Part shown: one piece after another, positions 11,948 to 53,335 of the stretch
Layout of the letters: each line of letters starts with the position of its first letter
Numbering within the stretch: the first letter of the stretch is position 1
From: Penicillus capitatus
Lineage: Eukaryota; Plantae; Chlorophyta
DNA: 64,000 nucleotides
Direction of reading: 5' to 3'
NCBI GenBank assembly: GCA_965649825.1
Contig: OZ287696.1
Coordinates: 787,101-851,100, forward strand
Program-made: the position numbers and the translations under genes
The notes under the pieces: generated by a model
What the model was told of the DNA's origin: nothing
Databases searched by the model: none
The model's input: the letters and a program-made list of their open reading frames with translations, nothing else

Positions 11948-11964
11948 TTCCACACAGACATCAG

Positions 11965-13792
11965 ATGATCGGCCTGCGGACGACAGAAATCCGTTCGCGT
12001 TCACCTTTCGTGGGCGGCAGACAACGAACGAGGCCCATCTGCTCAGCAATCGAGAACAGCCGCCCCAAGATCGTCGTCGTTGGCGGCGGCTGGGCAGGTC
12101 AGACCTTGCGGTGCGCACTTAGGTCTTCTCAACGTCGTGTGTCTGCAGGATTTGGTGCAGCGAAGCATCTCACGTCTGAAGGCTATGATGTTACTCTTCT
12201 CGATGCCGCAGCCAACCCTGGAGGACTGTCCACCGGATTTCGCACTCCACAGGGGCGTGCAGTCGAGGCAGGAATGAAGGGATTTTGGTATCAGGTAAGC
12301 TGCGACTGTTATGGAGTGAGATCTACGACAATGAACTGTGCAGTACCATAACATCTTCGCTCTGGTTCGAGAGCTTGGCATCGAGAATCCGTTTACGGAA
12401 TTCACACGGAGTGGCTTCTGGTGTCCAGAAGGACTGACAACAGAAGGGCCTGTCTTTTCAAAGCTCCCCCAGTATCCAACATTGCTTGGCCAATTCATCC
12501 ACACGACACAGCTCTTCAAGTCTATCAATGGAGCCCGTGCCTCTTTTCTTAGTGTGGCTGTGGTTCAGGCGTGTGAGTTTGGTGGATCAGCTGAGCATGT
12601 TTAACATGCTTTTGCCAGTGGTGGACTTCAACAGCGATCCAGCGACGTACCAGCGGTACGATCAGATGACGGCCAGGGAGCTCTTTAACAAAACAGGCAT
12701 CTCAAAGAATCTCTACACCGAGTTTCTGAAGCCTCTCTTGCTGGTGGGTCTGTTCGCTCCTCCTGAAGAGATCTCTGCCGCTTCGATGATGGAGACGATG
12801 TATTTCTATGCTCTGGCCCATCAGAATGATTTTGATATCTGCTGGTGCAAAGGATCTGTTACCGAACGGATCTTTGCTCCGCTGGTGGATCGCATCCGGA
12901 GCGCAGGGGGTCGTGTCATTGGCAATCGCATTGTGACCGATCTTGAAACAGATGCCGAAGGAATTGTGAAGTCCGTCAAGGCTCAAGATGTGCAGACAGG
13001 TACGGAGACCGTCTACGAAGCCGATGCCGTGATTCTGGCCGTTAGCATCAAGGGAATGAAACGACTGATGCGCACATGTGACACACTGGCAGGGCGAGAA
13101 GAGTTTCAACGGATCATGAATCTAAAGGGCATCGATGTTATGGCAACGCGTCTGTGGTTTGACAAAGACATCGAAACGAGATTCCCTTCAAACGTTCTCG
13201 CCCGTTTTGAACAGGATGTGGGTGGCACCTATTTCAATCTGTCACAGCTTCAGGTCAGCCCCTCCGATCTCATCTTGAAGAAAATGCATGCGTGTGGTAG
13301 GATGAGTACAAAGAGGAGAAAGGATCCGTCATCGCAGCAGATTTTTACCATTCCAATCCGATGATGCCCCGCACCGATGAACAGATCTTGACAGATGTTC
13401 AGTCTTATCTCAGTACATGTGAGCCCGCCTTTGCCTCGGCGAATCTCATCGATGGCGCCGTGTTGCGATTCTACGGTGCCGTCACGCACTTCAGTCCTGG
13501 ATCTTTCGCATCACGTCCTTTTCAGGAGACCACTCTACCGAATCTCTTCTTGGCCGGGGACTGGGTCAAAGGTGTTCCTCACGGTGCCAACGGACTGTCG
13601 CAGGAACGCGCCTATGTCACTGGACTGATCGCAGCGAACAAAGTGATCGAACGGTGCATGAAGGGATCGCCTGCCGCAATTCTGGACGTCCAACCAGACG
13701 AGCCACACATTGCTGCGTTAAAGACACTTAACAGAGAGATCAAGGACAGGATAAGGGGTTTGGGATTAGATTCCGTTCTTCTTCCTTGGTGA
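11965..13792 (+). CDS. FAD-dependent oxidoreductase, amine-oxidase / carotene-desaturase-like (cyanobacterial type)
   Basis: KIVVVGGGWAG/FGAA (GxGxxG), LLDAAANPGGL, AGMKGFWYQ/YHNIF, NLFLAGDWV, GLSQERAYVTGLIAAN; four GT-AG introns. Confidence 0.86.
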
Positions 13793-14015
13793 CTGCTTCT
13801 CATTTTTTAAGCTATCCTCTCTCGAACATTCTTTAAACTCACATCCCTTTTCACGAATCAACTGTATCCAGCAATGACAGTATCCTTTGAAGTAAAAGGG
13901 TGTGTTAGAAAAAAGCACGTCGTTGATAGTCTTCGTCTCTAGCGGACATTCGAGAAAACAACCTGGGATGAAAGATGAAGCAGCCGAGATCGCGATCCTC
14001 ACCATCATCAGCATC
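13679..14015 (+). repeat. left copy of ~340-bp diverged direct repeat (oxidoreductase 3' end plus decayed TFIIIC 3' end)
   Basis: Colinear with ~52998-53335; the minus-strand peptide AISAASSFIPGCFLECPLETKTINDVLFSNTPFYF matches the TFIIIC C-terminus IAAASVSSLIPGCLHKNLPKAKTVNETCYFANAPFCF. Confidence 0.85.
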
Positions 14016-14369
14016 ACCCCTGTGGTTCACCGCCTCCCATTCAACCGACCTCTGGTGATGGCAAACATAAGTCGAAGTCATCACAGACGCTGGATGTCAT
14101 GCCACGACATGTCTGGAGATCTCTGTCGAAAGCAAGACACGTGGAGTGGTCCATGCCTTCTTCGCATCGCTCATCTGGCGATGCATGTTGCCTGCCCTTC
14201 CATGCCGTCGATCTCAGTTTTCGTTCGTGGTGATCGAAACGCGGGATTGGCTGCGGACGCGCTTAGATACCGAGGCCGGCTGTTAACATCACGTCGGCAA
14301 ACAAAAATCTACAGAAAATTGTCCATTTTGATGTATATTTAAGCGACTGTGCGTTTGTTCGTTCGTTTG

Positions 14370-14432
14370 CTCTTGCGAACTGAGTTTCCCCGCGAACTCT
14401 TGCGAACTGAGTTTCCCCGCGAACTCTTGCGA
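14370..14432. repeat. 27-bp tandem repeat (CTCTTGCGAACTGAGTTTCCCCGCGAA x2 plus partial)
   Basis: Directly visible, just upstream of the ATG at 14475. Confidence 0.9.
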
Positions 14433-14474
14433 CAACTTTGCGAACAGCGACTTTTCCGCGTTCTCCTTTTCAGG

Positions 14475-17400
14475 ATGGATCACGAAGCCAGCGGTAAACG
14501 TAAACGTTCTCCGCAGTCGCCTTCAAGTCCGCCAACGAACCGTCCGCGGCGCAATCCCGTCGAGACGACGGCGCCGCCCTGTCGACAGCCCCTTCAGACG
14601 CTACTGCAGATCCTCACGTTGTTGAAGGCGGCCTTACCTGGGGATGGGCCATTCGAAGATGCCTGGTACGACACGGTACTAGAGCATGCGCGGTCAGACA
14701 AGCCACAGGCGAAACGTCTGGCCGCGCAGCTATTAATCCGAATGGCTCCAAAGTACCCAGGTAAGATCGAGACGACAGTGGCGGCGCTGATCAACATCAG
14801 CGCCTGGCGGCCGGAGACACGAAGCGAGCACCAACGCAGTCTCTGTGAAGAGACGCGTTTCAAGGCACTGGCCATCTTCGACGATATGCTGGATTGGACG
14901 ACGCTGGAAGTGAGGCCTCAATTCATGAAGATCATCCTGCATCTCTTCCGGTAAGCGACTTCGCACCGAACTTTATGATGTGACGTCTGTAATCCTAGGC
15001 AATCGTCCAAACTCCGCAGGTACATGAAGGACACATATACCAGCCTCGGGATCGACATTGAGCTGCTTCCTGGACGCGAGTGCTGGACAATTCTGGATGT
15101 CCTGGCCAAAGGACTTACACGCTACCCCAGAGAAATCCTGTCTGAGTGCCTTCGCATCTGGACCGACATGTCCGAGCCGTATCATCAATCGGCTTATGAC
15201 TTCTTCCATCGCATCCTGCTGCCAACGGAGACATCAGATCAATACACTCTGGCGTACGAGATCCACAAATCCGATAAAGATCTCCGCACCTGGACACTCG
15301 ACAGGATCGACAGCGTCAACGAAAGTGAGATCCACAGTGATGTGACGCGACGTGACTGATGTGTTTTGTGTGACCTGTGTAGGCAGACAGCTCATGGAGT
15401 GTCCGGACTCCCCTCAGTACATGGAGCATGTGCATAACCTGCAGCCTGTTCTTAGGAATCTGGATACTCGCCCTTCTCAGAAGAAGAGATCCAGAAACGA
15501 TGCATCCACATCGACTTCAGATCTACATCCTCAGGAAGAAGAGACGACTCAGGAACGTCGTGTGAAGCCGAGATCTCTGTCCTTGTCTGCCCCGGACGCG
15601 TGCGATGCATCAATGAAAGATATTACTGGAGACAGTACAGACGAGCAAGCTCAGAAAAAATCCAAAACATCCACAACATCGGAGGCTCATGAAAGTAACG
15701 CGGCATCCAAGGACAAAAACACGAACACAGCAACCCAAAGTAAAGAGAACCTGTCGTGTAACCATGGTGGAAATTGCTTTTTCATTATAGAAGCGGATTC
15801 CATTAGTGAAGAATCTCTGGAAAAGCCAGAAGACAACTACTATCCTGCGCAAACATCAAGCCATAGAGAAGACGCTCCTAAAACAGAAACAAAAACAAAC
15901 ATAGAGGACAAGAAACCTGAAGCTGGAGATACCCGCTCTTCGAGTTCTAGAGAAAAACCTGTCATCGAGTCTTTGACAGTCCCAGCAACCGAAGTAGAAG
16001 AGCAACAGCCTGGACACCAAAATGCACCATCAAGCCATAGAGAAGACGCTCCTAAAACAGAAACAAAAACAAACATAGAGGACAAGAAACCTGAAGCTGG
16101 AGATACCCGCTCTTCGAGTTCTAGAGAAAAACCTGTCATCGAGTCTTTGACAGTCCCAGCAACCGAAGTAGAAGAGCAACAGCCTGGACACCAAAATGCA
16201 CCATCAAGCCATAGAGAAGACGCTCCTAAAACAGAAACAAAAACAAACGTAGAGGACAAGAAACCTAAAGCTGGAGATACCCACTCTTCGAGTTCTAGAG
16301 AAGAACCTGTGAGCGAGTCTTTGACAGTCCCAGCAACCGAAATAGAAGAGCAACAGCCTGGACACCAAAATGCACCATCAAGCCATAGAGAAGACGCTCC
16401 TACCGAATCTTCAACAGTGATGCCAGCTGATCTGGCGCAGAACCAACCGTTAGAAGAGCCTGCACATGTGTCCGTTGAAGCCTTGCCAGATGCTCCGGAG
16501 AGGCATCAATCTGTAGATGAAGATGTCTGGCAGAGTATTAGAGAAGGCATTGCTGCTGAGCCTTCAACAGCGATGATGATAGATGCGGAAGAAGAGCAAG
16601 CTGGACATGAAGAAACCTGTCCAGGCCACAGAGAATACCGCCATCTAGAGCCTCCAATGTTCATGGCACCTAATGTGGAGCAACAACCTGGACACCAAAA
16701 TGCACCATCAAGCCATAGAGAAGACGCTCCTACCGAATCTTCAACAGTGATGCCAGCTGATCTGGCGCAGAACCGACCAGTAGAAGAGCCTGCACATGTG
16801 TCCGTTGAAGCCCTGCCAGATGCTCCGGAGAGGCATCAATCTGTAGATGAAGATGTCTGGCAGAGTATTAGAGAAGGCATTGCTGCTGAGCCTTCAACAG
16901 CGATGATGATAGATGCGGAAGAAGAGCAAGCTGGACACGAAGAAACCTGTCCAGGCCACAGAGAATACCGCCATCTAGAGCCTCCAATGTTCATGGCACC
17001 TAATGTGGAGCAACAACCTGGACACCAAAATGCACCATCAAGCCATAGAGAAGACGCTCCTACCGAATCTTCAACAGTGATGCCAGCTGATCTGGCGCAG
17101 AACCGACCAGTAGAAGAGCCTGCACATGTGTCCGTTGAAGCCCTGCCAGATGCTCCGGAGAGGCATCAATCTGTAGATGAAGATGTCTGGCAGAGTATTA
17201 GAGAAGGCATTGCTGCTGAGCCTTCAACAGCGATGATGATAGATGCGGAAGAAGAGCAAGCTGGACATGAAGAAACCTGTCCAGGCCGCAGAGAATACCG
17301 CCATCTAGAGCCTCCAATGTTCATGGCACCTAATGTGGAGCAACAACCTGGACACGACTATGACCAGACGTCCCTCCTCATCGAAGAGCTTTCGCGTCTA

Positions 17401-19803
17401 TTCTCAACACCAGGCGCCTTGCCAACCGAGGAAGGACAGCATCGTCCTTTGCATGCAGCCCCGCCAGTGAGATTCATGCATTTGCATGAATACGAGGCCG
17501 CCCATCCCAGTGATTCCGATGATGAGTTACCAGACTACGATGACCCAGACGAAGCCGAGTTTGCCACACCGGAGCCTGACACATCAGAACATGCACAAGG
17601 CCCAGCCGCAGCCGAGGCCGGAACTCTAGTGCACGACAGTCCAATGAGCATGGTGGGTGATGATTTACATGGACATTTCGAGGCCGAGTTTGATGTCGAC
17701 ATTTCAGTGCACGACAGTCCATTGAGCAACGAAGGTCGTGATCATGTAGCTGCAGTTTTTGCAGCCATGTGGGCCGCAGCCGAAGCCGAGCTCTCCACAC
17801 CGGAACCTGGATCACCAGAGTATGTACCAGGCGAAGCCGAAGCCGAGTTCTCCACACCGGAACCTGGATCACCAGAGTATGTACCAGGCGAAGCCGAAGC
17901 CGAGTTCTCCACACCGGAACCTGGATCACCAGAGTATGTACCAGGCGAAGCCGAAGCCGAGTTCTCCACACCGGAACCTGGATCACCAGAGTATGTACCA
18001 GGCGAAGCCGAAGCCGAGTTCTCCACACCGGACCCTGCAGGAAGATACTCAGATCATCACCACTATCCTGAGCCTGTGTCACAAGAAGATACACAATATG
18101 AAGCTGAGTATGTCTCGCCGGATCCTGCAGGAAAACACTCAGATCATCAACGTCATGATGCGCATGTACCTGAGTCACATGAAGCCGTTCCAGCAGACGT
18201 TGATAATGTCACTCAACTGCACCAACTCCACCAGTTAAGCACCAGCGAAAACCCTGCACCAGAATTGCCAGAAAATATGACAGATGAAGCCCAACCTGGA
18301 CTCGTTACTCCAATGGCTTGCCGTCCATCAAGCCACATCGACGATCCTCTCCCAGAAGCTCCTGAAGCCGTGCAGATCAGAGTCGAAACTTTATTTGTCA
18401 ATCCCTTGTATCGCAACAGTCCATCGAGCCACATCCATGGCCCTGCATCAGAAACTCCTGAAGCCATACAGACATCAGACGCCATGCAGACCGAAGACGA
18501 AGCCCAACCTGGATTCGTTACTCCAATGGCGTGCAGTCCATCCAGCCACATCGATGATCGTCTCCCAGAAGCGTATAAAGCCATGCAGATTGAAGCCGAA
18601 ACTGGATTTGTCAATCCATTTCATCGCAACAGTCCATCGAGCTGCATCCATGATCCTGCATCAGAACCTTCCGAAGCCATGCAGAAATCATACGGCATGC
18701 AGAGCGAAGACGGAGCCCAACCTGGATTCGACACTCCAGTGAAGCGCCGTCTAGGAAGCCCCGTTGACAATTCTGTCCCAGAATGGCCAGAATCCATGTC
18801 AGATGAAGCATACCAAACTATGCTTGGAAAGAGGCCTGTGCATGAGACTGCCGATGATCTGCCATTAGATGCAGATCGACGCAGTCCTGCACATGGACAC
18901 AGCCATCCAAGCATGAGAACGACTTGCCCACAAGGGTCGTCTTCCTCGTTTCGACCTCCTGGAAGAAATGCTCCAGTAAACCCATTGGGTCCATCAACAT
19001 CTGGTGCAAATGCCCCAAGGGACCCAATGGCACCGTCAGGTTCTGGCGAGCAACCTGATGTCGAAATCATCAACCCTCTTCCCTCGTACTGGACAGGCAA
19101 ACAAGCATCGGGGCATGTCAGTCATGATGATGACATGATGAGCAATCTCGCTGCCTTCTCGATGTGCCAAGAAGATGGACAGGAAGATCCAGAAGAGTTC
19201 ATTCGGCAGCAATCTCTTCTTCTGGATGCCTACAGCAATGCTCGAGACCTCAAGGATCTGCAGCCCGCTGAACATCCCCCTCAGATGACCCAGCCAAATA
19301 TCCCTCAGCAGCCCGTTGACAATTCTGTCCCAGAATGGCCAGAAGATATGTCAGATGAAGCCCAACCTGGATTCGTCACTCCAGTGAAGCGCCGTCTAGG
19401 AAGCCCCGTTGACAATTCTGTCCCAGAATGGCCAGAATCCATGCCGGATGAAGCCCAACCTGGATTCGTCACTCCAGTGAAGCGCCGTCTAGGAAGCCCC
19501 GTTGACAATTCTGTCCCAGAATGGCCAGAAGATATGTCAGATGAAGCCCAACCTGGATTTGTCACTCCAGTGAAGCGCCGTCTAGGAAGCCGCATCCACG
19601 GTCCTGCATCAGAATGGCCAGAATCCATGCCGGATGAAGCCCAACCTGGATTCGTCACTCCAGTGAAGCACAGTCCATCAAGCCCCGTTGACAATTCTGT
19701 CCCAGAATGGCCAGAAGATATGTCAGATGAAGCCCAACCTGGATTCGACACTCCAGTGAAGCGCCGTCCAGCAAGCCACATCCATAGTCCTGCATCAGAA
19801 TGA
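14475..19803 (+). CDS. API5 (apoptosis inhibitor 5)-like N-terminal helical domain fused to ~1480 aa of acidic, Pro-rich tandem repeats
   Basis: WYDTVLEHARSDKPQAKRLAAQLLIRMAPKYP resembles the API5 N-terminus (KRLAAQ); introns 14951-15019 and 15325-15382 join it in frame to the 15352-19803 ORF. Confidence 0.6.
15856..16377 (+). repeat. coding tandem repeat A, 174 bp (58 aa) x3
   Basis: Unit starts TCAAGCCATAGAGAAGACGCTCC at 15856, 16030 and 16204; near-identical copies. Confidence 0.95.
16378..17355 (+). repeat. coding tandem repeat B, 330 bp (110 aa) x3
   Basis: Unit starts at 16378, 16708 and 17038; shares its first ~23 bp with repeat A. Confidence 0.95.
17779..18035 (+). repeat. coding tandem repeat C, 57 bp (AEAEFSTPEPGSPEYVPGE) x4 plus partial
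   Basis: Units at 17779, 17836, 17893, 17950 and 18007. Confidence 0.95.
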
Positions 19804-20040
19804 CCAGAATCCATGCCGGATGAAGCCCAACCTGGATTCGTCACTCCAGTGAAGCACAGTCCATCAAGCCCCGTTGACAATTCTGTCCCAGAATGGCTAG
19901 AAGATATGTCAGATGAAGCCCAACCTGGATTCGACACTCCAGTGAAGCGCCGTCCAGCAAGCCACATCCATGGTCCTGCATCAGAATGGCCAGAATCCAT
20001 GACAGATGAAGCATACCAAACTATGCTTGGAAAGAGGCCT
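19312..20040 (+). repeat. coding tandem repeat E, 93 bp (31 aa, PVDNSVPEWPEDMSDEAQPGFVTPVKRRLGS and variants) about x8
   Basis: Period 93 from 19312; alternating variants; one unit has TGG changed to TGA at 19801-19803. Confidence 0.92.
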
Positions 20041-21012
20041 GTGCACGAGTCTGCCGTCGATCTGCCATTAGATGCAGATCGACGCAGTCCTGCACGTAGC
20101 TACATCCATGTGCACGAGTCTGCCGTCGATCTGCCTCGATGCAGATCGGCGCAGTCCTGCACATGGAGGCAACTCAGAATGCCATAGCTACAGCCAATAG
20201 CTACTGCCATGTGCATGAGTCTGCCGTCGATCTGCCTTGATGCAGATCGGCGCAGTCCTGCACATGGCGTAACTATCCAAGCCTGAAACAACGCGCCTAC
20301 CCGAGTCATCCTCCGTGAAGGCAAAGCCGCTGGTGCCACTGCAAAATGCCCCATTCCATTACCTCCTCGACTCGCAATTGAATCAAGAACTCCCATGACG
20401 TCGGATTTTAGAATGGCCGAAAGCCCAGAGATCAAAGATTTCGAGTATCATTTTCTTCTACATCACTCCTACTGAGCCCAACCGCCTCTGTCATAAACTA
20501 CTGAGCCATCTGAAGGAACGCGAAGCCGCTGGTGTTCTGCATCTCCGATAATTCAACGCCACTCCCTATCTCATTCCTCTTTCAGAATCGAGTTTGACAG
20601 AATTTCCTGACACAGAGGATCCAATGAACAACGCCCTCATCTGTTTCCTGATTATGATGTGATGTGCGAGACTTTGCTGATGTCTGTGTGTCAAACATGT
20701 TTGTTTTTGATGTGACATTTGTTCAGACGCATCATCCATTGTTAATCAATTTTCAACTCAGTACGTGCGTTACGCAACCATGTTAAGCGACAGCGTTGCA
20801 GCGAAAGTCATCGCCGCACTCTTCTCTTGCGTCTCTGTCGGGATTTCTCTCAATCAGGTGTGTCTCTATCTGCGTCTATCGCGCCCATTTGACCTTCTGT
20901 CGCGTTCCACAGATTGTCATGCACTTGAAATTCTATACCGAGCCCGTCTTTCAAGTAATCTACTGCTCGGCTGACAGGTCACCCGACAGAGCTGGCGAGA
21001 GGATCTTGTGAA
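20040..21012 (+). repeat. 3' tail and downstream region of the API5-like gene, duplicated at ~42650-43500
   Basis: Shared CATGAGTCTGCCGTCGATCTGCC...GCAGTCCTGCAC units and a near-identical segment 20680-21010 vs 43165-43500. Confidence 0.88.
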
Positions 21013-24000
21013 GCAATGCTTGCCCCTTCGTTTGTCGCAAGATTCGTTAAAGATACACAGGCCTCCTGGACCCTTGCGTCTGAAAGGGGATAATCTAGGT
21101 GTGGTCCTACTGTTCTCCCCGTTTCTAACAGTATGAAAACAATGTCGGTGGAGTACGTTGTTTTGCTGTTGATGGTCACTAACGCGGAGTCTTCAACGAA
21201 GTCATGGTTCCGTGAAAGACGCGCTGCTATCACATGTACCGCACATGCGACAAGATAACAACCCATAGGTGTCTGCGCCATGCATCTTTTTTAGTGTGAA
21301 TTGTCCTGTTCCAATGGTTCAGCTATATACATGTCTGACGGTCCTCCTGAGAAGAACAGTGTCGGCTGAGGTTCACATGTCAGGTGAACGAACGTCGCAA
21401 AGTGATGCAAGGTTACGGCGTTTCATGGTGAATGGATCTCCCGCACCTACCTTCGTCACAGAGGAGAAGCGCAACCACGCTTGTGCGTCGACTGGATGTA
21501 CCCTGCCTACGTCAGATGTTGTTCACTTTGAGATCGCGAGTAGTCAATGTGAGTAGTGGGACTCGGTATTGGACGGAGTCGCTCGAGTGACTCATCTGTG
21601 CGCATCTAAGGCAGGTATGATACAATGTGTGTCTCTCTCTGGCCGTGGGCCACGTCACTGAACATTCTGCAGAAGTGTAAGAAGGAGCCGCGATCAAACG
21701 TCACAAGATCCGATTTCGCTCAAGCACCGTGAGAGACAACCTCGTATTCCTGGCTCTCTGACCGCCCTCCTTCGAGACGATCTGATTAGCACGTCTTCAA
21801 GTCATAGGTTTCGTACTCAAAGGAGTCTCCTTCCATCCGTCCCACAAAGCACGGAGACAGGGAGACATGGTGAGGTTCAATACAAAGAAAGGAAGGCCAG
21901 CCCAGCAGAGCCGGATGTGCGATGTGCATCGCATCGGATCAAGAACACTTTGACAGTCGAAAGCAGTATAGCAACGGAAACCTTTGCTCATCGATCCCGG
22001 ATGTGGCAGTAGGGAATAAGTTGCCTGTCAGGATGAGGGAAAGACGGTCGGTGATCTCGATGCAAGGGTACGCTGTTCACTTCCGAGTGCTGTCTCGAGG
22101 AAGTAGGGGCTTCACTTCATCCCCCGCAGGGGTACTTCAAATCGATAGAGAAGGCTGACATGCCATGAGAATCGACGGTGCAGTTACGAAGTGGTGATGC
22201 GGCTTCGAGTCCACGACGTGAGTGCTTCAAAAGGGCCTCTACTGTCGACTATCTCAATCTTAGAACGTACCTGGCAACGTTTACGGCGTGACAGTGGTCC
22301 TGCGCCGACAACTTCTTCTCTCTGTCTCCGACCCGGATGCATCACGCAGTCGCAGTGGACTACCTGCGCCTTGTCGCTCGCGCTGCGATCAGTCCGCTCA
22401 GGAGAGTGGGATAGGTCACTACTTCGCTGCGGGAGGTGATGGAATCTGTAACTGCCGTGAGAACACGGGCGACGACGGGTTTCTCCGCCGCTGCTCTTTC
22501 GACCACGACGGCCAGGATATTATCGGCGATGCCGTTCAACCTGAAACGATTCTCGAGAGATTTCGCCAGGCTCTTCACGGCGGTATCCTGCGACGTTGGC
22601 GCCGTCGATGACGACGGTGTCATGGTTCAGCCGAAGGTCCGTTTTCACTCGCCGTATCCGCTGCCGAATCTCTGACCTGCCCCACAGTCGTCGCGATATT
22701 CCTTCGATGACGTCGCCGAAGTTCCCGAGTCAGAGCGTCTGGGTGTACAGGGAATGCGTCCCAAGCACTCACTGTCTGGCGAAAATGCGCGATGCGGCGG
22801 TGCTCTACGCCCAGGCTCCGAACTACTGGCTGCCAAAGGTCCTCGCTGGATCGATGTTCGTCCATGAGAAACTGGGTGTCCAATGCGCATGATGCCCTGG
22901 TGAGCGACCTCGAGCGTCGGATGCTGACGCCTGCCGAATCTGCCATCTGACACCTGTATCGTGCGGTCGCAGAGCACCGACTGCCTTCGGACTGCGCCGG
23001 TGCCGAATGGTAGGTCCAAGTAGAAACGAATGGCATTCGCGAGACAGAAGAGGCTCACGCGCCACACTGCCTTTCGAAATCTACAAAGACAGTGCTGGAA
23101 TGGCGGTTCACTTCGACAAGGACGAGACGCTTGCAAGTCTGATCGGGACATGAAACACCCGTATCTGTCTTTTATCTCCTCTACCTGACATGCTCGGACC
23201 AGGATCGACAAGGCAAGGCAAAATGCACGTTGAAATTAGAAAACAGATGACGAAGGACGCATCGTGCACCGTCATCCTGGACCATAGATTCGATGCGAAG
23301 AGGGACGTCACCTGATCCAGAATCGCCTGTAAACTGCGTCTCCCGCCGTCAGCCGTCAAGTACTGCGTCTTCAACAGAGCCCTGGGCCACCGCGCCTTAA
23401 ACAGGCCTCCAACATCGAGCGAACAATGACCTTGCTCGTGAACTGGTGGAAAGTGAAGCTTTTCCGTCAGTCATGTCGTCTTCGCTTGCGCCAGGACGAC
23501 ACCCTTTCCCCGTAGGCCGTTTGTCGATCATCGGAAGGAGAAGTAGAAGAACTACACATAACGAAGGCAAAAGTGTGGGGGCATGCCGCTCCCTTTCATC
23601 ATAGGGATGCCTTGTCTTGAGTCGCTGCTACGTCAGTAGTGGAACCAATGACAGATCCATCCATCCGTATCCCCCGCGAAGACGAGGACGTCGGGGAGTG
23701 CGACATTCTGGCGGGTCCCTCTGGAGATGTGTTCGGTTGAGATGCGCATCTTCTCGACGCATTGGCGAGAATGCTGTCCAGGCAGTCAGTGTGACATACG
23801 AGCGCCGTGATTTTCGCTGCGTCGACCCGTCGAAGAAGAACCGCGACATTGCAAAGAAGCTTTTCATTCCCGCCGCTTTTGTCGCCGAGAACATCGAGAT
23901 AGATCTGTGGAGACGGCGCCCTTCAACGGAACGCAGTGCACGTGACAGAGACGTGTCCCAATGTGTGGTACATTGATTTCTGCTTCGTAGCTTCCGTTCG

Positions 24001-40712: not shown

Positions 40713-40783
40713 GAAGACGCCGTTGTCGGTGTGAAAGAGATCGGCGACGATTGAGCAGCGTCAGAACGGCCACTTCAACGAAA

Positions 40784-41369: not shown

Positions 41370-41601
41370 ATGTCTCTCCGTTCGAGATCAGTCCACTGGA
41401 GATGTGGTAGGTTACCTGCCGAGCGAAGTGACGTTCGACCCATTTTCGTCTGACGTCAGACTGCCGCGAAGAGAATCGCGCATTCTGATTGGCTGACCGC
41501 GGTCGAATTTGTTGAAAATGTCACATCCTCGACTACAAAACGCGAGGCGCCATACCAGTTTTCGTATTTCCGCTCTTCCGAACTGTGCGCCACTGCTCGC
41601 G

Positions 41602-42612: not shown

Positions 42613-42649
42613 CATGCAGACGTCAGTTCATGGTAACAAGGGGCATGTA

Positions 42650-43500: not shown

Positions 43501-43996
43501 GTGCTGCCTGACGAGCCAAGTCGTGATGGATACCTCCGCATGGAAGCTGTACGAGACGGCTCTCCGTATCCCGCTGGACGTCACGATCGACATTCCTCCG
43601 GATGTCAGGATGCCTGCCTCGCCTCCGTGCGCACCTCTTTCGGCGGCGTCTTCAGATCCGTTTGCCGCTGGACCCAGTGCGCCTCTGGCGATTCCAAGCA
43701 AGTCGCCGTCTCTCGCAACGAGGATTCCCGACAGAAAGGCGATAGAGATGTCCGACGCAAACTCGGTCGATGGACGACGCGTTCGAAACACCGAGATCGG
43801 GGAGACGCAAGGTGTGGACATGGGCAGAGGTGCGGCGCCATCCGCCGCTTCCGGCGAGTGGAGCGATGTGGCTGTCCGTTCCTCGTTGTTTCGGCTGGCG
43901 AGTCGAGACGAGGCAGCAGAGGGAGATGATGGCTGCCGCGGATTCAGTTTCTGTCCTTCCAATGCGTCTACGCGGTCGCCCCGCTCGGAGAACTGA
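43462..43996 (+). pseudogene. orphan 3' fragment of the TM-kinase gene
   Basis: Matches 25989-26523 (TSAWKLYETALRIPLDVTIDIP...TRSP.SEN*); no kinase domain upstream. Confidence 0.85.
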
Positions 43997-46879
43997 TGGA
44001 CGCGGATTCGACGAGCGAGATGCATCTGACCTACTCTGCTTTGCCTTAGTATATTGTTCTAGCCTGTAGCGGATACTCCGCCTTCGGTTTCATCGTCTTC
44101 CATGCTATTTTCAGTGATCGGTTCAGCTTCTTCATATACTCATCTATTTACTGCGCTACACGCTTAAACACTCTCTTTGCATTGCATTTGTGCTTTTCAA
44201 TTTCATGCAAACTGTTGTCTCGTGGCTTTCATCTGTTGTCATTGCTCAGAAGGCAGCAGCCTACCAGAGCAATTACCAAAGCAATGATGCAAATTTTATA
44301 TTTGTCGAATAGATGGTCGACGAGGAAAGACTCTTTGCGGTAACATTTCTTTCGAATATTCGTTATCCAGAGATTTTAGAGTTGGTTAGTCCGTGGGACA
44401 GATGTGTCATGCAGGACACACGTTTCCGTATCGAGCACTTGGATTGTCGAATTGCATGGCGTCATCATTGTTCCTAGGCGTTAAGTTTTCGCACTTCAGT
44501 AATCACCTGTTGACGCCGATCACATTAGCAAACAAACGAGAGCAAACTTGTCTTCGTGTATGTAATACACGTGACTCCAATCGTCTTGCCACGTCGGTGA
44601 CATCGACGTTCGGATAGTCGCTGCCATCAGACGAGCGTTCAAATGTCGTTCCGGCTATCTCAAATCCGACGCGCGGTACGCGGAGACGCATAGACCTCTT
44701 TGTCGCTGTCGGAGCGAACGACAAGCGATCGTGCAGGCCTCGTCAGAGAAATCTGTCAACACGAGCAACGAGGACTGGAGAAAGGCGGATCACCCAGAGG
44801 AGATGACGCCCTGAAAGTGGGGCGGCAGAGATGTCGTTCGATGCGTTGAATGGCGCAGCAGCAGTCAGTTGACGCCATCTGAGCTATCGAACAAGGCTTC
44901 CTGGAGGCTTTGCGCTCTACGGCCTCCTGTGACCGGCGTTCTCTGGAGTTCACGCTGTTCCTGTATGATCTGTTCGTCTCTGTAAAGGTCTTCCGCGTAC
45001 CTCTTATGTTGTACTACGCTCGAACTGTGAAGTCGCCAAGGCGATAGAACGAAAACGACAGGTTCGTCATTCCAGCGCGTTCTCTCTTCTTTGCCTTAAA
45101 AAGCTGCGCGGACTGTTATACACTTCTCAGACGGTAGATAGCGTCCACGCTGAATCATGCGTGCTCACTGCGTAGACAGCTTCGAAATGGCGATTGTTCG
45201 TCTTGCGCCCCTCTCTTCGAAGCGCATAGTCAGCTTGCTGTGGATGACAAGTAGCGACGTCTTCATATTTTGTCGCTGCGAAGTACCGTCGCCCGTTCTG
45301 AGCAACACCTGACCAATGCTAGTTCGAATCGATTTGCAGCTGGAAGAGCGAGCTATAACTGCCTAAGAGTCCGTCTGGCGCATCGACGGGGCTCTCGGCT
45401 CTCACTCTCCTATCGCTACGTCTTCGACGTAGCCGCCTCAAGTCTATTTCATGCGTAGGCACGTACGTCTCTAACATCTCAGGCACTGCACGGATCTCTG
45501 GAAATCGAGTGCAAGACACTCGGACAGAAGCCTGGCACGGTAATGTTAGGAGACAATCAAGAGTGCGGCACATAACGAGATGAGCAGTTGTCGGCGGTCA
45601 CACATCGCGACGTGCTTGGCGAGTTTAGGAAACCTAAATCGACGGCGCCTGCTCGGAGTCGGCGTCGCGTTGTCTGTCGGCGACAGCGAATGCGATGAAG
45701 AGATCTGTGGATTCCCGAAGTCTTCGCCCAGAGGACGGTGACGAGCTTAACGACGACATGCGTCCTGCAACACCCTCCGCAGCAGTCATGAGAGAATCGG
45801 AGATTAAGCGTTTCGTTGTTAAATTGCAATTCGCGTGCATGCAACGTAACGGATATGGAGATTGACTGTTTAAACAATGTTTGTAAATGTCACTCTTTTG
45901 AAAAGTGTGTTGTACTAAAGAAAAGTGTTACAATAGTGACTCGAAAAACTTGTAAAATATCACTCTTTTAAATAGTGTGATGTCCAGTGAAAAGGTGTTA
46001 GAATGGCGGTGCACAGAAGAACAGATGTTCACCCCGCCACAAAGTCTGTAAGAAAAGAAAGAATGAGAGATGTGTGTTAGAGATGGAATGACTTACGGTC
46101 GGCGAGCGGAGCCTCGCAATGCGGCGCGGGAGGTCACCCCGAACGAGCACTGGCTCCGATTCCAGTCAGGGTGCGCAAGGAGAACGAAATGCAACTGATG
46201 TTCGACTAGTAGGAGGTAGTCGTGCCACTCTCGATGAACGACGCGCAGCGCGGACATGCAGGTAAGGGGTCCAGACATGAAAGAAGGAAAGGGGACCCAT
46301 GAAAAAACAAACATGAAAGGGAAACAACAAAAACACAGAACAGACATGCAGGCAGGTGAGCAAACAAGCAGAAAAGGAAAATCAACAGTAAACATACAAG
46401 GAAAATGCATGTAACAGGTAAGCAGCGAAGGAGGAAGAAACAAAAAAGGCAAAGACGACAAATAGAAAGCAGGGGGAGACACAAGAGACACCCGGAAGGA
46501 AGAGAGATGAAAAACGCGGTCCCGGGTGTCTGAGAGTAGCACGATGCCGCCCTTCATCGGCAGTATACACCCGCCTGCCTCTTGTGCGCGACCCCGAAAG
46601 GCGGGCAGGTCGCCAAGGCCCTGCCCGCTGGTGCCGCGAAGGGTGATCGACGCCGCTGCCTCGGGGTGGAGAAGCAGCGGCACATCGCTGGAGTGCGGAT
46701 GCCGGATGCCGGATGCGGTGCTCTGTTGCTCTGGATCTGGAGTCGGATGTTCTTCATGCTTCAATCATGCTGGTTGTCTGCCACAATGCTTTGATTCTCT
46801 GAATGCTCAGCCAGTCTATCTTCCTGAGTCTATCATTCAACCACATGTCAACGGATGAACAGAGTTGGATTGCCTTACC

Positions 46880-49800
46880 TCTTGATTAGTGCATTCCGCG
46901 ATGATTCTCCTGGCTGTGTCGATGGCAGAAGTGCTGAACGAGACCACTTCGACCGGCTACGAGTGCGGTACAACCGAGAAAGCAGTTGGCAATGTTCTTT
47001 CTCAGGCAGTGGACTTGGCGAAGTCCCTAGGATTTGTCGCTCCAGTCCTTGGACACCACTGGGTTTGATTCCTGTCCTCTATTCATCCAAAGAAGAATGT
47101 TTGAATCTATGGATGACTTGATTCTGGAAGGGGATCTTCTTTCATCCACATCTGCGGAACACGTCTATCTACCAGATAGTGTTTCGTTTTATCTCTATGA
47201 ACTGTGCCATCGTTTAGGAGAGTGCGCGTAAAGAGTAGGCTAACCTGGCGATTGCAATCTCCGAGTGTTGGCTGCTAATCACTTGAACAGCCTCGCATCT
47301 GACTGCTTGCATCAGTGTGGACTGACATCTCCTTCCAGAGGAATTGGTAGTCGAAAGAGAAGTCCTGCCACTCCAGCGTGTTGTCTTGTTCACAATGCTC
47401 TGATACTTGGAGGAGAAGCGAGTTTAGTGGGGCGTATGTAATCCTTCCAGTAGAATGTACTCCAGAATGCTTCGACTGACGTGCGTTCATCTGCTCTCTG
47501 GCAGAACAAGATGACGTAGGTACTGTGATTCCCGCTGTGCGATTGCATTGCAGTCTCCACCAGGTGCTGGTAGAACACATGGATGACTGTATCAGGTTAG
47601 CCAGCTTGTCTTGTTTGATGAGAGCAATAGGACATCCAAGGGGACTACTCACAGATGTGCACCATAGCTTCATCACGATAGTTCACCGAATTCCGATGCT
47701 CGATGGAGCTTTCATCTGAATCGAGGTCGCGCCTTCTCAGCGACAGGTTCTGTCGCTCCAAGAGGCCCGAGGATAATAGTTCACCAGGGAAGTCGTTTCG
47801 ATGACCGCAGCTGCAGATGGAGGAATGTGATCTTTCCCACCAGATGTTAAACACAGTTCTTTTGGCCTTCCTCCAATCTGGGTGTCTCGGTTAACAAAAC
47901 GCATTCTGAACAACTGCATCGTCTTCGGATAGCAGAAAAGCTCCCTCCTTCGCCTGACTCACTCACTGTCTTGGAGGAGACCATACAGTTCTCCTCTTTG
48001 TGATGAGTCTGACTTGTGTCATTCAAAGGATGTGTTGGCTGACTTCAAAGGGACGGCATCTCCATGTACTTTGCTGGATGGCTCGGTGAGTTGATGCAGT
48101 CTGCTTCATCCTGGAAGGACTGCTGAATCAATCCAGAGGATCAAGGCTTGTTCTCATCGGACATCTTCATGCTCTTGTTTCGTCCGAGAAGCAATTTCTG
48201 CACGGACTGTATCATGACTGTTCAAAAACCGAGCAGGACTTACTGTAAAGATCCGATAACTGGTTTATTTCGATCACTCTGACCGCGAAGGTTGTGTGTG
48301 CCAGAGTAGGATTCGTGCTCGAATATACATTATTGTCTCTGCCGAGTCACTGGCCCTTGACACTCTTTCTTCGACGAGTGTCAATGTTGCTTCTCCTTGG
48401 TCACTCAAGCATCTGTACTTGGTTGAGATGGTTTATATTCTGCTCATTCGCTGACAGCCGCCAGCACGGCATTAGCTCCGAAATGTCATGACTTGTCGAA
48501 GGATTCCTCGCGTCCAGTTCAACTGAGCTTGCGTAAAGTTGTTTCCGTCTCGGCCGCTCTAGAACCACAAAGGACCTTGAGATTTCGTCAATGGACAGAG
48601 ATCAACTAACTGTGCGTGTGCCATTCGGGCATGCAGAACTGATCTTGTTCGATGACGTCTTCTGTGTGTTGTGAGCAATCTTGAGTTGTCCCCTCGACGA
48701 GGCAGCACCTAAAACCAAATGCTCGGAAGGGAAGAGACATTGCAGAACAGCACATTTAGATTGATGCACGGCCAAGTATCCATGGAAGAGCACGTTCGAA
48801 GGACCAATCTTCGAGCAGTGAACTCTCTCCTCAAATCTCACTCCGACCCAACACTCTGACGTGTTCGTGTTCTGTTGGGAGTAGCTGGGCGGACTGCCGA
48901 TTTCAGAACTTGTCTCAGCTTCTCGATCCTCTATGGGGAATGTGGAAGAGTGTCCCTGTCTTCGTCGAGTGCATGATGATCGCATGTCTCTTATCCTATG
49001 AGGAAGTCTAGCCGCAGCGAAATCGGCAGCAATGCCTACTTGAGCGTAAGGAAGGCGTTTTCCCAAGCCGGGTCCCATCATTTGAGATCACTCCAATGCT
49101 TCCTCCTTCCATCCAATTGGCGTCTCGGCACAAAATCATTCGTCTGTCCCGAGTCAGATGGGAAAGATTGGCTCATGTCGTGAATCTGTCACTCAATCTC
49201 CGCTGGTGCTGTTGTGCATGCACTCTTGAATCTCATGTTCTGTATCGCGAAAATGCGGCCAAGATCTGGAAGACAGAGGTGCTGCCAGATTCTTCATTTT
49301 GTCGGCCGAGCTCGTATGCCTGCGGTTTGTTTTTTGCTCGATGTCTACCAGGACAGACACACTCCTTCGCAGAGAATGCTCCATCTCATCTCTGCATGGA
49401 CAATGAGAGTGTCCAGAGGTGAAAGAGTGCAAAATGGACGAACCTGGCCCAAGCATTCTTCGAAAGGTGATTGTTGCATTCTGCTACCAAACTGGAGACG
49501 TATATGATCGACCATGCAGTTCCAGTCCAGCACTCGTATCACTAATCGACTGTCTCATTGGAGTGGCATTCCTCCTTCCTAATGTCAGGTACTGAGTGAT
49601 GCGCGGGTAATGAAGCCTCGGGTTGTCAGACGGTGCGATTGCATCCACAGTCTGTCGAGACTTGGAGGAATGATAGTCTGGCTGAGTGGCGAGAGTCCAT
49701 CTCCAGGTCGAGTGGCCACCGATGTCCATCAAAAGGCATCCTTATTCTGACAGATCATGATCAAGCGGGCACTAAGGTTTCAAATATAAGCAAACCTCAT

Positions 49801-50450
49801 CGAAGGTGCATTTCCACTCGCAGGTCAGTCGACATGGACAGACGGGCACTGTAGATGATACTGACATGTCTTTGTGGTCTTCTGATACCGAGACCACAAA
49901 TTATTCACGGAGGTACGGGACAGAGTGTCAACATGCCAATCTCTTTGCTTCGATGCTTGAGGAAGTCCTTGTTTGTACCGACAGACGTCTAGCCTTCTCT
50001 GTAACAACTTTCTTATTTTGAAAAGGCCTGAGGAATAGCGTTATCCATGAGACTCGTTTCAATGACCGCACCTGTGTGATAGAGAATCGTTGTCATGTCA
50101 TCCAGGCTCCCTAAGATGTGCTTTCCAGATGCATTTGAAAAGAACTGTATGCCAGTTAGCAGAAAGGATTCTGGGCAGGTGAGGCATCTCCAGACTGAGA
50201 ATGAGTTTTCTCTTGTTGCAAGCTATTACTTGCACAAGCGATCCAGTCCTCTGCTGGGTGCTAAATAGACATCCTTGATGCTAAAAGGTCTTCCATTGAT
50301 TTCGTTGGCAGCAAGCCTCACTGTATCGGCTGGATTTTGAGACTCTGGCGCGATAAATTGCTTCATCCAGGCACATCTCGGACAAACTGGGATAATTGAT
50401 CCATGCAGACTTTGGTGAGGGTGCTTTCCAGAATCCTTTGCTGTACTTCA
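46880..50450 (-). mobile_element. decayed APE-RT LINE relic, copy 2, preceded by an extra RT-region fragment (~49760-50450)
   Basis: Ordered degenerate motifs IRVLDWNC (49542), DTLIVHAE (49410), IAADF (49033), FPSEH (48733), VEAFW...IRAL (47475-47400), FAD (47160, frameshifted), GQESNPVVSK (47065), CFLG (46985). Confidence 0.55.
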
Positions 50451-50990
50451 GCACGAGTTAGCATTGCCTCCATCCAGACAGCAAACAGCGAATCAGACGG
50501 TGACAGCCTCAAAAGTACAAAACACCAGATAGAACCATGATATCATCCATCCACAGTAAGATAGCAAATTGAAGAACGACAGCCTCCAGACAGCCCAATA
50601 GATCACAACCATGACAGCAGCCTTCATGTAACAAATAGCAAACTGGCTATGGCTGACAGAATCCAGGCAACGCAATGGCAGATCAGACCGTGATATGCTC
50701 CATCCACAGTAAGATAGTAATTCGGCCGATGACAACCGCCAACAGCATAATAGTAGATCAAAGCTATGACAGCCTCCGTGCAGCAAAATCAACCACAACA
50801 GCCTCTATGCAGTAAAACGGCAAATCAGATGATAACAGCCTCCACCCAGAGCAAGCCAGCAATAAACACTCAAGTCTCCACAGCCAAAAAGATTATAAAC
50901 AAGCCAACCACAACAAAGCGAAGGTGGATTGGCAGGAAAACGGCAAAGACAGAAAACAGCCCCATAACTTTTTATTTTTTTCATTTTTTA

Positions 50991-51082
50991 GGTCACACTT
51001 TGCAGAGTGTGACCTCATTATTTATTTTTTTTTGTTTTTTAATTTTTTCTCAGAAAAATATCACACAGAAAAAGTGTGATAT
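50991..51082. other. TCACAC/GTGTGA dyad pair in AT-rich island, copy 2
   Basis: GGTCACACT-TTGCAG-AGTGTGACC and ATATCACAC-AGAAAAA-GTGTGATAT. Confidence 0.85.
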
Positions 51083-51922
51083 GTGTGAAAATAAAATTCT
51101 TTATTTTTTTAAAATTTCCTGCCCCCTAGAAAACAGCTTGTAGAAAGGTGAGGGAAAAGACCCTCACAGAGAGAAATCGGGGATAAAAACCTACACACAA
51201 AGCAACACTAGGAAAGAATAGAAAAGGAAATAAACTTACACATTCCCCGGAGAGGAAGGTGGGGCGTGGTGGGATGGCACCTGGACGGGCGTGGAAGGAA
51301 AACAAGGAGGGACGGGGAGGGAAAGGAGGTGGATAAGAGGGGACAGAAAAAAGGTAAGGACGGGGAGGAAGCAAAGGGTGCCGAAGGGAATATTTAAAAA
51401 CCCGTGGCCAAATTGGCGGACGGGAGGAAGGGAGGGAGAGGAAGAAGGGCCGAGAAGGAATGAGGGGAGGAGGAGTCGCGGGAATGCAATAGACATGTGG
51501 GCGCGGGGGAAAGAGAGGAGGCCGATCAGGCTGTGGAGAGGGGGGTGAAAGGATGGGCTGCGGCGTGGTGGGACACGGGGACCATTGCATGTAGGACGGA
51601 GACAGGGGCTGAGGCTGGCAGGTCGCAGGATTGGCAGGCTGCTGGACCACAGGAGGCTGGACATGCTGCTGGGAGAGAGGCTCATGTGACTGCTGCGCTG
51701 TCGAAGGAGCGGGGCAGGGTGGCTGAGCGGCCGGAGGCGGATTGCACGGAGGATCGTGTATTTGTGCCTACAAACGCAAACCTGTCAAGATATTGTGGAT
51801 GGACGAGATGCGTGCTTACCTCTCCGCCTCCTACGTCCATGGAGGATCGGCCCTCTTGGGCCAGTCGCTCTCTCCTCTCCTGGGCTGAGAGGACCCTTGC
51901 CCGCCGTTGGGGCCGAGGCTGC

Positions 51923-52032
51923 TCGGTTTGGCCCCTATTGGGGCCGAACCGAACAGGAGGGGCCTGCTGCCGTAGCAGATCCTGGCCCCTCTGAGCGGTT
52001 GTCTGGGCCTTTAAGGCCCAGAACAACTGCTC
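51923..52032. other. cluster of three GC-rich hairpins, copy 2
   Basis: Only 4 differences from copy 1 over 132 nt. Confidence 0.8.
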
Positions 52033-52997
52033 ACGCTCGGCCGCGGCCATGCCCCTGAAGGCCCTGGGCGGCTGATTGCCCAGGACCTCCTGCAGCGTCA
52101 CCTGAGAAAAGCTAAAGGACACACAGAGAGTTAGTACATCAGCAGTGTGACGAATCCTGGAGAAAAAAGACGTAGTATCAATGCGCCAAAGACCAAAACA
52201 GGAAAGAAAGATGCGTCTCGAAAAACAGAATGACAGTTGCGTTCCCGTGAGCATGCAAGCGTGAATGAAAGGGTAGGAGCTGAACGACTGTATTTGGATT
52301 GAAGGCGTTTATATGGCAGACGAAGAGCTCTGTGGCGTGCAGCGCGTCGACGTATTGCTACGAGACTCACGGTTTTCCTGGGTATCCGTAATCAGCTTCT
52401 GATGTCATGTGAGAATCCGCCATCGTCGAAATCGCTAGAAAAACCGAAAACTCAGGAAAACCGAGTGGGCGTAAAGGCCAGCGACAGGACTCTTAAAAGC
52501 CGCCTCGGTTGTGCTCAGCGGCAGGCGGGCGGAGGATAGGAACAGCGACCGTTTGGGGGCGGCTGCATGCTCCGGCTGGCGAAGAGATGGCCGCCCGAGG
52601 GCCAGAAACGCAGAATGCTGTCGTCGGGACGCGAGACGCGAACCAGAGAGTGCTTTTAGATGCTCGGAAGACAGTTTTACAGGTGAGATTGTCTACAGTT
52701 TGTCGGTATTCTCTCCTCTAGGTGTAACCCGCATGCGTTTCCGCAGCCGTTTGAGGGAAAATCTCCGAACGGTGAACAGTTTGAGTCGGCTCGGCGTTGC
52801 CTGAGCGGAGCTATGAGGCAGGCGTTCTTCCTAGCGGAAGCGGCACGGACTCTTCGCCACGGCGGCTATCTGTTTCGGAAGCTTCTGCCGAGAACGCCGT
52901 CGAGAGAGTGCATTGCGTTGGTTTAACGCATATCGTTTTCGGAAGTTGTCGATGCATCAACTCCCTCGAACATGGAAGGCAGATGAGAACGACCGGC

Positions 52998-53335
52998 TTT
53001 CTGCGGCGACCAGACGAGCTACAGCTTGGTGTGTAAGAGACGCTTAACACAGAGATCGAGAACAGGACAAGGGGTTTGGGTTGAGATTCCGTCCTTCTTT
53101 CTTGGCGACTGCTTATTCTTTCGAGCGATCCTCTCTCGAACATTTCTTAAACAAAGATCCCTTTTCACAAATCGGCAGGATCCAGCACTGGCAGCGTCCG
53201 TGCAAAACAGAAGGGAGCGTTAGCAAAGTAGCACGTTTCGTTGACGGTCTTCGCCTTCGGCAGATTCTTGTGAAGACAGCCTGGGATGAGAGATGAAACC
53301 GATGCGGCCGCGATCGTCGCAGTCTTCAGCAGTCC
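52998..53335 (+). repeat. right copy of ~340-bp direct repeat (decayed oxidoreductase 3' end plus intact TFIIIC 3' end)
   Basis: Reads RPDELQLGV*ETLNTEIENRTRGLG*DSVLLSW versus the real gene QPDEPHIAALKTLNREIKDRIRGLGLDSVLLPW*. Confidence 0.85.

Follow-up and report, generated by a model that had tools for sequence, protein, structure and literature searches.

Here, we describe a pair of convergent genes in the green alga Penicillus capitatus whose shared downstream junction is present in two copies, one beside each gene. The genes encode an oxidoreductase of the plastid/cyanobacterial type and GTF3C1, the large subunit of TFIIIC (hereafter TFIIIC). They lie tail to tail in a window of 64,000 nucleotides, the whole stretch analysed (positions 787,101 to 851,100 of contig OZ287696.1, assembly GCA_965649825.1), and are separated by a gap of 39 kb. 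A direct repeat flanks this gap, and in each of its copies one gene has an intact 3' end while the other is a relic. The explanation we favour, with about even confidence, is that one old head-to-tail block duplication took place at the convergent pair, that the block included TFIIIC and its upstream neighbours, and that the ~320-bp repeat is its scar. The locus thus offers a clean, datable example of a compact tail-to-tail pair that has been separated with neither gene damaged. With the junction duplicated, each gene has a 3' end to itself, and the DNA between them is free to grow.

The duplicated junction

Two segments of the window, J_L at the oxidoreductase and J_R at TFIIIC (Table 1), align in direct orientation with 75.7% identity over 325 columns (self-BLASTN of the window, E=1.2e-56). 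A MAFFT alignment recovers the identical block, and similarity outside it is at the random level on both sides. The original prediction, made from the letters of the window, had placed a colinear repeat at 13679-14015 and 52998-53335 and had suggested aligning the two junctions and comparing the window with itself. Both comparisons were run. The segments align significantly, the repeat is real, and its predicted ends lie within ~14 bp of the BLASTN ends.

The two copies carry complementary relics. The oxidoreductase that ends in J_L is collinear to its last residue with a 547-aa homologue (P0002); its C-terminus is ...GLGLDSVLLPW*, with the stop codon at 13790-13792. Further along J_L, the minus strand at 14014-13889 holds a relic of the TFIIIC C-terminus, comprising the last ~45 codons (39.5% over 43 aa). 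It reads IAISAASSFIPGC... where the live C-terminus reads IAAASVSSLIPGC.... In J_R, the live gene is TFIIIC, the stop codon of which is at 53165-53167 and the C-terminus of which is conserved with that of an outgroup introduced below. Here, the relic is that of the oxidoreductase: 53007-53105 translates as RPDELQLGV*ETLNTEIENRTRGLG*DSVLLSW, its last 33 codons, with two in-frame stops and the terminal stop gone. The predicted arrangement is confirmed on both sides, with an intact oxidoreductase 3' end adjoining a TFIIIC relic on the left (translation and tblastn) and an intact TFIIIC 3' end adjoining an interrupted oxidoreductase relic on the right. In annotation, genes should be called neither at the relics (13889-14014 and 53007-53105) nor at the TFIIIC fragments described below (41361-42604).

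Neither relic continues beyond the repeat. By tblastn, nothing more of the oxidoreductase precedes its last 33 codons to the left of 53009, and no further TFIIIC relic is contiguous with J_L right of 14013. J_R adjoins Q, an older direct copy of segments from elsewhere in the gap, and at the seam between them the sequence switches from arm-like to oxidoreductase-like within eight bases, CCAGACGA, which are common to 35257-35264 and 13694-13701. Because the oxidoreductase relic starts at a rearrangement joint with 8-bp microhomology, it was most likely already truncated when it arose and is not the decayed remnant of a complete gene.

This has consequences for the predicted history, in which each copy of the junction lost the complementary gene. 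The locus does share with reciprocal gene loss, or non-functionalisation, a single live copy of each gene and leftovers in complementary positions, and TFIIIC could have been present in two whole copies. The oxidoreductase piece, in contrast, has only 33 codons and starts at a breakpoint, with nothing lost. Remnants along the length of both genes, of the same age as the junction repeat, were not found; what remains is the 33 codons of the oxidoreductase and, in the old class, the ~45 codons of TFIIIC. The prediction is therefore at most half right.

The locus in related genomes

Two related genomes inform the history of the pair. The sister genome comprises two ERZ26696514 contigs (L001/L007 and L002/L008) that are 98.8% identical to each other. 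Its flanks have 82-85% nucleotide identity to those of the window, and its oxidoreductase protein has 94%. The outgroup is contig L003 (SRR33785045), with an oxidoreductase that is 70% identical. In the outgroup, the oxidoreductase stop (11182) and the TFIIIC stop (~11263) are convergent and ~80 bp apart. This synteny check supports the predicted former adjacency of two convergent genes. Furthermore, the direct repeat with its complementary relics and the outgroup adjacency together support the proposal that the junction was copied by duplication. The gap measures 80 bp in the outgroup, ~5.7 kb in the sister, and 39 kb in the window.

On a further contig (L011), from a closer relative than the outgroup, an oxidoreductase (78% identical) is followed by 2.3 kb (2517-4817) without TFIIIC and with nothing similar to the window. 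The adjacency was lost or never existed in that lineage, and is not universal. This contig gives no help in dating the duplication.

In the sister, ~5.7 kb separates the two stop codons, compared with 39 kb in the window. The sister also carries an oxidoreductase relic before TFIIIC. Its left boundary lies ~16 bp from that of the window, and 7 of these 16 bases still match. There is no TFIIIC relic beside the sister's oxidoreductase. Instead, at the equivalent of 13836, the sequence passes directly into 237 bp copied from the 3' end of an aldo-keto reductase gene, the source of which lies upstream of TFIIIC. This fragment is followed by X, a block with a SAP30-like gene and an abhydrolase_2 gene, and the two have the arrangement and orientation that the window shows upstream of TFIIIC. 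The 1.5 kb (“u”) before the sister's right junction copy has no match in the window; next to it, ~0.7-0.9 kb is SAP30-upstream DNA that is common to paralogous loci.

The two halves of the junction repeat bear on its age. In the TFIIIC half, the window relic is 69.5% identical to the window's own live copy and 64.5% to that of the sister, while the two live copies are 75% identical. The relic is thus at least as diverged as the live copies are from each other, and the sister shares the oxidoreductase relic before TFIIIC. These findings support the predicted old event and date the junction duplication to about the time of the species split or earlier. In the oxidoreductase half, the copies are 82-87% identical within species (86.9% in the sister), compared with 75% between the relics of the two species, and species-specific changes are common to both copies. 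This likeness within species points to gene conversion between the junction copies or, with lower probability, to a parallel origin.

A parallel origin would require the junction to have been duplicated independently in the window and sister lineages, with the final 100 bp of the oxidoreductase gene acting as a fragile site. The greater likeness of the junction copies within species is what such a history would produce. It would also accommodate the ~16-bp difference between the relic boundaries, the unrelated DNA that flanks the seam in the two species, and the presence of a TFIIIC relic beside the oxidoreductase in the window only. However, gene conversion explains the similarity within species, and two breakpoints would rarely fall within 16 bp of each other by chance; with 7 of the 16 bases matching, the boundary may even be identical. 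The divergence of the window's TFIIIC relic, which at least equals that between the live copies of the two species, is also difficult to reconcile with separate events. We therefore consider a parallel origin very unlikely.

Contents and origin of the gap

We find that more than two-thirds of the gap is one arm of a large palindrome. The contig was extended past the window, to the window-equivalent of 82312, via loci L010, L014, and L015 (100% match in the overlaps); the window belongs to an 844-kb metagenome-assembly contig, ERZ25074695 ctg340460. The extended contig shows long inverted arms of high identity, with defined inner and outer boundaries and a spacer of 18.9 kb (41365-60295) between them. 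The left arm begins within 12 bp of the end of J_L. It contains a gene with tandem repeats, a 7-kb segment with a protein kinase gene, several kb without recognisable domains, and an inverted copy of X. A second contig from the same assembly (ctg339103; L013) is 95-99% identical and has the same oxidoreductase, J_L, repeat gene, kinase, and arm layout. Indels between the arm copies point both ways, with a 7-kb deletion in the right arm and a 1.6-kb deletion in the left copy. A further copy of 29949-32754 lies beyond the right arm (83-87% identity). We considered the left arm as the source of copying, with the right arm carrying ~40 bp of the TFIIIC relic, and dropped this idea since similarity beyond 14013 is not significant in a shuffle test.

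The original prediction described a 39-kb island bracketed by the repeat. It is correct that the repeat flanks the gap and, as self-comparison confirms, that the island contains segmental and inverted duplications. However, the island is mostly palindrome arm, and the other arm lies to the right of TFIIIC, so that the repeat-rich domain runs at least 29 kb past the right bracket. An apparent inserted island can be mostly local DNA, copied both inverted and direct, and the unstable domain may reach beyond the brackets that are visible.

The inner end of the left arm adjoins inverted fragments of TFIIIC. These were among the predicted pseudogene pieces and are confirmed by self-comparison and tblastn. 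They are joined to the arm via the 1.6-kb deletion, the joint of which lies in a 9-bp microhomology, TCGTCTCGA. The TFIIIC fragments, the 5' flank of the reductase region, and X thus stand in the gap in the mirror order of TFIIIC-reductase-X, interrupted solely by this deletion. In both genomes, material from the far side of TFIIIC occurs in collinear order within the gap: the reductase fragment and X in the sister, and the TFIIIC fragments and X, mirrored, in the window. The remainder of the window's gap is Q, which holds a truncated copy of the 3' end of the kinase gene and ends exactly at J_R. Apparent microhomology is seen at several rearrangement joints: it spans 8 bp where Q meets J_R, 9 bp where the 1.6-kb deletion was closed, and 7-8 bp at the 7-kb deletion. 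What is visible in the gap is copies of local genes and two intact lineage-restricted open reading frames (ORFs). These observations support the gap as a site of repeated local duplication, whereas the gene-shuffling nursery of the original prediction is speculative.

The block X is derived from a home locus, PRMT5-SAP30-abhydrolase-Utp14-ArgJ, that is present in both genomes (L004 in the window's genome; L016/L017 in the sister). A further SAP30 paralogue is found elsewhere in both (L005 and L006). The distances among X and home copies are all 0.18-0.22, and informative sites group the window X with the sister X, against the home copies, by 72 to 40 and 28. Since the two X copies group together, X was in the TFIIIC neighbourhood before the species split, having been copied there from the home locus shortly earlier.

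The SAP30-like proteins (PF13867/PF23112) belong to a small family whose genes occur in three genomic settings: PRMT5-SAP30-abhydrolase-Utp14-ArgJ, SAP30-TPT-HA-SNase, and the TFIIIC neighbourhood (loci L004, L005, L006, L009, L016, and L017). In the outgroup, SAP30 and the abhydrolase occur in yet another context. Both X copies of the window's genome end at the same base on the SAP30-upstream side (36529, and 65130 of the extended contig), while the sister X and loci L004-L006 continue 0.6-0.9 kb further. This cut-off is a rearrangement joint specific to the window's genome that either predates the arms or was copied between them. The public gene call at the right-arm X (window-equivalent 64345-64839, L010) is a 164-aa ORF in a different frame from the SAP30-like ORF; by symmetry, the corresponding call in the left arm is 36820-37314, in place of 37121-37648. 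The SAP30-like protein of the X copies is missing from the protein database, and so an empty search there does not show the gene to be lacking.

The copies at this locus span a wide range of apparent ages. The junction repeat has ~70-76% identity, and the right part of Q, with 73-81% identity to the arm, is as diverged as the two junction copies are from each other. X and its home locus differ by a Kimura two-parameter distance (K2P) of ~0.2, compared with 0.15-0.31 between the species. The inverted TFIIIC fragments (K2P 0.14-0.155 to the live gene) apparently postdate the junction repeat. Identity is 95% between the sister's reductase fragment and its source, and 95-99% between the palindrome arms. 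Gene conversion most likely keeps some of these copies younger-looking than their origin. The evidence for conversion is direct in the sister's junction copies and circumstantial in the arms.

Under the favoured block duplication, the ancestor would have had the oxidoreductase and TFIIIC tail to tail and ~80 bp apart, as the outgroup does today. The duplicated block would have started 33 codons before the oxidoreductase stop and run into TFIIIC, and probably extended through TFIIIC, the aldo-keto reductase, and X. Its head would have been joined at the 8-bp microhomology by a replication template switch or by end-joining, rather than by transposition. The oxidoreductase piece heading the second copy would have been truncated from birth. 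The redundant upstream copy of TFIIIC would have been destroyed, with its last ~45 codons remaining beside the oxidoreductase, and each live gene would have kept a private copy of the once-shared 3' region. This destruction would have taken a different course in each lineage, to which the window lineage would have added an inversion or the formation of the palindrome. The interval has evolved separately in the two lineages, as its sizes in the sister and the window show. In the window lineage, it now includes an inverted arm, TFIIIC fragments, and Q, and its growth was probably by local duplication, accompanied by deletions at microhomologies of 7-9 bp. A block that includes TFIIIC and its upstream neighbours is favoured because TFIIIC-side material is collinear in the gaps of both lineages.

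Several observations weigh against this history. The TFIIIC fragments of the gap, the sister's reductase fragment, and the arms all look younger than the junction repeat and the species split, and under the block model both lineages must therefore have undergone gene conversion or later re-copying. The TFIIIC-side copies in the gap are direct in the sister and inverted in the window, so that an extra inversion is needed. The DNA to the left of the seam is unrelated between the species, being Q in the window and the unmatched 1.5 kb in the sister. No second X was found upstream of the sister's reductase, where the sister data reach only the equivalent of 60189 and a gap in the gene calls is possible. 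Finally, the right ends of J_L are secondary joints in both species (the arm boundary and the reductase fragment, respectively), and the original extent of the duplication has therefore been erased.

A smaller initial event would take the apparent ages at face value. In that case, only ~0.32-0.35 kb would have been duplicated together with the first insertion, as a staggered break was filled in, leaving a very long duplication of target-site type, and the insert was joined by microhomology. The TFIIIC, reductase, and X material of the gaps would have come in later, through local duplications that were independent in each lineage. The junction would be oldest, the TFIIIC fragments would postdate the split, and the sister's reductase fragment and the arms would be recent. 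This agrees with the microhomology at the seam and with the lack of any oxidoreductase or TFIIIC relic of old age beyond the repeat in either species. However, the gap would then have had to receive one and the same TFIIIC-upstream block twice, independently in each lineage, and target duplications of hundreds of base pairs are generally rare. Furthermore, the right end of J_L, where it meets the arm boundary in the window and the reductase fragment in the sister, is probably a secondary truncation rather than the original limit of the duplication. We regard a duplication limited to the junction as the main rival of the block model, possible but doubtful.

The arms (K~0.014-0.035) look much younger than the adjoining collinear DNA of the TFIIIC fragments (0.14-0.155, or ~85-87% identity). 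This fits either arm-to-arm conversion or a second, later duplication. Large palindromes with arm-to-arm gene conversion are known from the ampliconic regions of primate sex chromosomes. The present palindrome resembles these in its inverted arms of 20-27 kb and 95-99% identity, its 18.9-kb spacer, its lineage-restricted genes, and the youthful appearance of its arms. It differs in that recent re-duplication explains the identity of the arms equally well, in that the spacer holds an essential single-copy gene, TFIIIC, and in that the host is an alga.

Two broader scenarios, which we judge unlikely even when taken together, would give the locus a wider meaning. Either duplication of a shared 3' region is a recurrent way of uncoupling overlapping convergent genes in compact genomes, the breakpoint having been hit independently at a fragile or selected site, or the palindrome is kept by arm-to-arm conversion that preserves lineage-restricted genes and flips the TFIIIC spacer. 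The latter scenario would resemble sex-chromosome amplicons, and the preserved genes would be the repeat gene together with the SAP30-like and abhydrolase genes.

The original prediction also reported relics of long interspersed nuclear elements (LINEs) in the island, for which we find no support. Pfam searches of all ORFs of at least 70 aa in 20.1-33.4, 35.1-36.7, and 47.3-50.8 kb returned no domain of any kind. Other selected ORFs of the island returned nothing besides the protein kinase, the SAP30-like gene, and the abhydrolase. There is no reverse transcriptase, endonuclease, transposase, or integrase domain in the scanned ORFs of the gap, a scan that leaves room for a decayed element with ORFs shorter than 70 aa. 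Furthermore, an ORF from the arm occurs at only three places in the assembly, all at the locus or on the second contig of the locus. We conclude that the gap consists of local, cellular DNA rather than of a mobile element.

Formally, a large insert with a direct repeat on either side is what a target-site duplication leaves behind, and the insertion of a LINE or another transposon between the two genes could also have left both flanking genes intact, as seen here. Long target-site duplications are, however, rare for LINE or filler-DNA insertions, and those of hundreds of base pairs are rare; at 320 bp, the present repeat is far above the usual size. The joints, which were read directly, show no poly(A) or terminal repeat at either junction, and there are no element proteins or termini. 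The content of the gap can, instead, be traced to neighbouring cellular genes, and the arm gene is restricted to this locus and its second contig. A mobile element as the origin of the gap is hardly credible.

An assembly artefact, with the island or the palindrome being a mis-join, was also considered. The contig comes from a metagenome assembly, and long near-identical inverted repeats are hard to assemble. However, the junction copies, with 76% identity, are too diverged to be collapsed alleles. The second contig repeats the left junction and arm with 95-99% identity, and the right junction relic recurs on two contigs from another assembly. In addition, the arms show 1-5% divergence, a 7-kb indel, and arrays of different length, and they are 18.9 kb apart, unlike fold-back artefacts. 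We consider an artefact highly improbable.

Segmental duplications joined by microhomology, whether through template switching (fork stalling and template switching, FoSTeS, or microhomology-mediated break-induced replication, MMBIR) or through end-joining, have been described for complex rearrangements in many eukaryotes. The present locus resembles such duplications in its head-to-tail copy, in having a breakpoint within a gene, and in the microhomologies of 7-9 bp at the seam and at the later deletions. It also mixes inverted and direct copies of neighbouring DNA at one locus. The differences are that, here, the mechanism is suggested by the joint sequences alone, and that the right end of the block has been erased. 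The locus combines known processes, namely segmental duplication with microhomology joints, a palindrome, and reciprocal relics, with no new element or mechanism.

Genes and repeats of the locus

Table 1. Features of the locus, in coordinates of the 64,000-nucleotide window
Feature	Position	Strand	Description
Oxidoreductase	12025..13792	+	Intact; FAD amine-oxidase family, plastid/cyanobacterial type; PF13450/PF01593
J_L, left junction copy	13693..14013		Live 3' end of the oxidoreductase (to 13792), formerly intergenic DNA (~95 bp), TFIIIC relic
Left palindrome arm	14002..41364		95.3-98.9% identity to 79856-60296 of the extended contig; 20-27 kb inverted duplication
Repeat gene	14349..20300	+	Lineage-restricted, with in-frame tandem arrays; ORFs 14349-14954, 15024-15359, 15352-19803 (1483 aa)
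7-kb segment	22755..29732		Absent from the right arm, deleted there at CAGnGAAT microhomology; contains the protein kinase
Protein kinase gene	24454-26523	+	Intact; within the 7-kb left-arm segment
X_1	36529..40527	-	Inverted SAP30-like and abhydrolase_2 block, derived from the home locus
SAP30-like ORF in X_1	37121-37648	+	
Abhydrolase exon in X_1	38806-39465	+	
TFIIIC pseudogene fragments	41361..42604	+	Inverted; correspond to 58688-55514; adjoin the inner end of the arm
Q	42638..53017		Older direct copy of arm segments 20032-21013, 25989-29674, and 30277-35264; 73-93% identity
J_R, right junction copy	53009..53331		Oxidoreductase relic 53007-53105, former intergenic DNA, live TFIIIC 3' end
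GTF3C1 (TFIIIC large subunit)	53165..58490	-	Intact; PF24538, PF24101, PF24657, PF24658; tblastn P0121, P0122
Aldo-keto reductase, C-terminal part	59268..59815	-	Upstream of TFIIIC; 237-bp 3'-end copy (a_1) adjoins the sister's oxidoreductase
Right palindrome arm, start	60296..64000		Continues off-window to ~79856; contains X_2

The oxidoreductase has four exons (~12025-12294, 12341-12529, 12564-13253, and 13301-13792), and its closest named matches are from chlorophyte green algae (54-57% identity). An mTERF-family gene (10457-12118, minus strand) lies head to head with it, with almost no spacer. This arrangement, and the left flank with Mnd1, His_Phos_1, and SMC_Nse1, is collinear with the sister genome at ~85% identity. 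Scans of the window for tRNA genes and Rfam families gave no matches.

The predicted repeat-expanded gene in the left arm is confirmed. Within the ORF at 15352-19803, there are in-frame tandem arrays with periods of 174, 330, 57, 213, and 93/186 bp. These are all multiples of three, so that the reading frame is kept while copy number changes. The repeat-rich ORF is 1469-1483 aa in the left arm (15352-19803 in the window), 1172 aa in the right arm (L014 3850-7368), and 1606 aa on the second contig (L013 2794-7614). The N-terminal domain of the repeat gene has only 8 relatives among 1.8 billion representative proteins.

Two candidate sources for the kinase, the SAP30 home locus and a kinase near the pair in the outgroup, were rejected, as it is similar to neither. 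A direct repeat of ~33 bp (ACAGGTCACCCGACAGAGCTGGCGAGAGGA) at 20974-21013 and 25989-26028 flanks a 5-kb segment with the 5' two-thirds of the kinase gene. In Q, at 43462-43501, a single unit of this repeat is present without the 5 kb; the segment was either deleted between the repeats or inserted along with a duplication of 33 bp. The arm also has a 23-bp tandem repeat at 33476-33580 (4.6 copies, 98% identity), in a segment that is present in Q as well.

In the sister genome, an apparently intact retroelement of the long terminal repeat type is located at 87-4798 of L006, ~5 kb from the SAP30 paralogue. It has ORFs of 954 aa (RVT_1, an integrase zinc-binding domain, and rve) and 610 aa (gag-aspartyl protease). 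A 560-bp stretch near this retroelement weakly matches 21010-21573 of the window.

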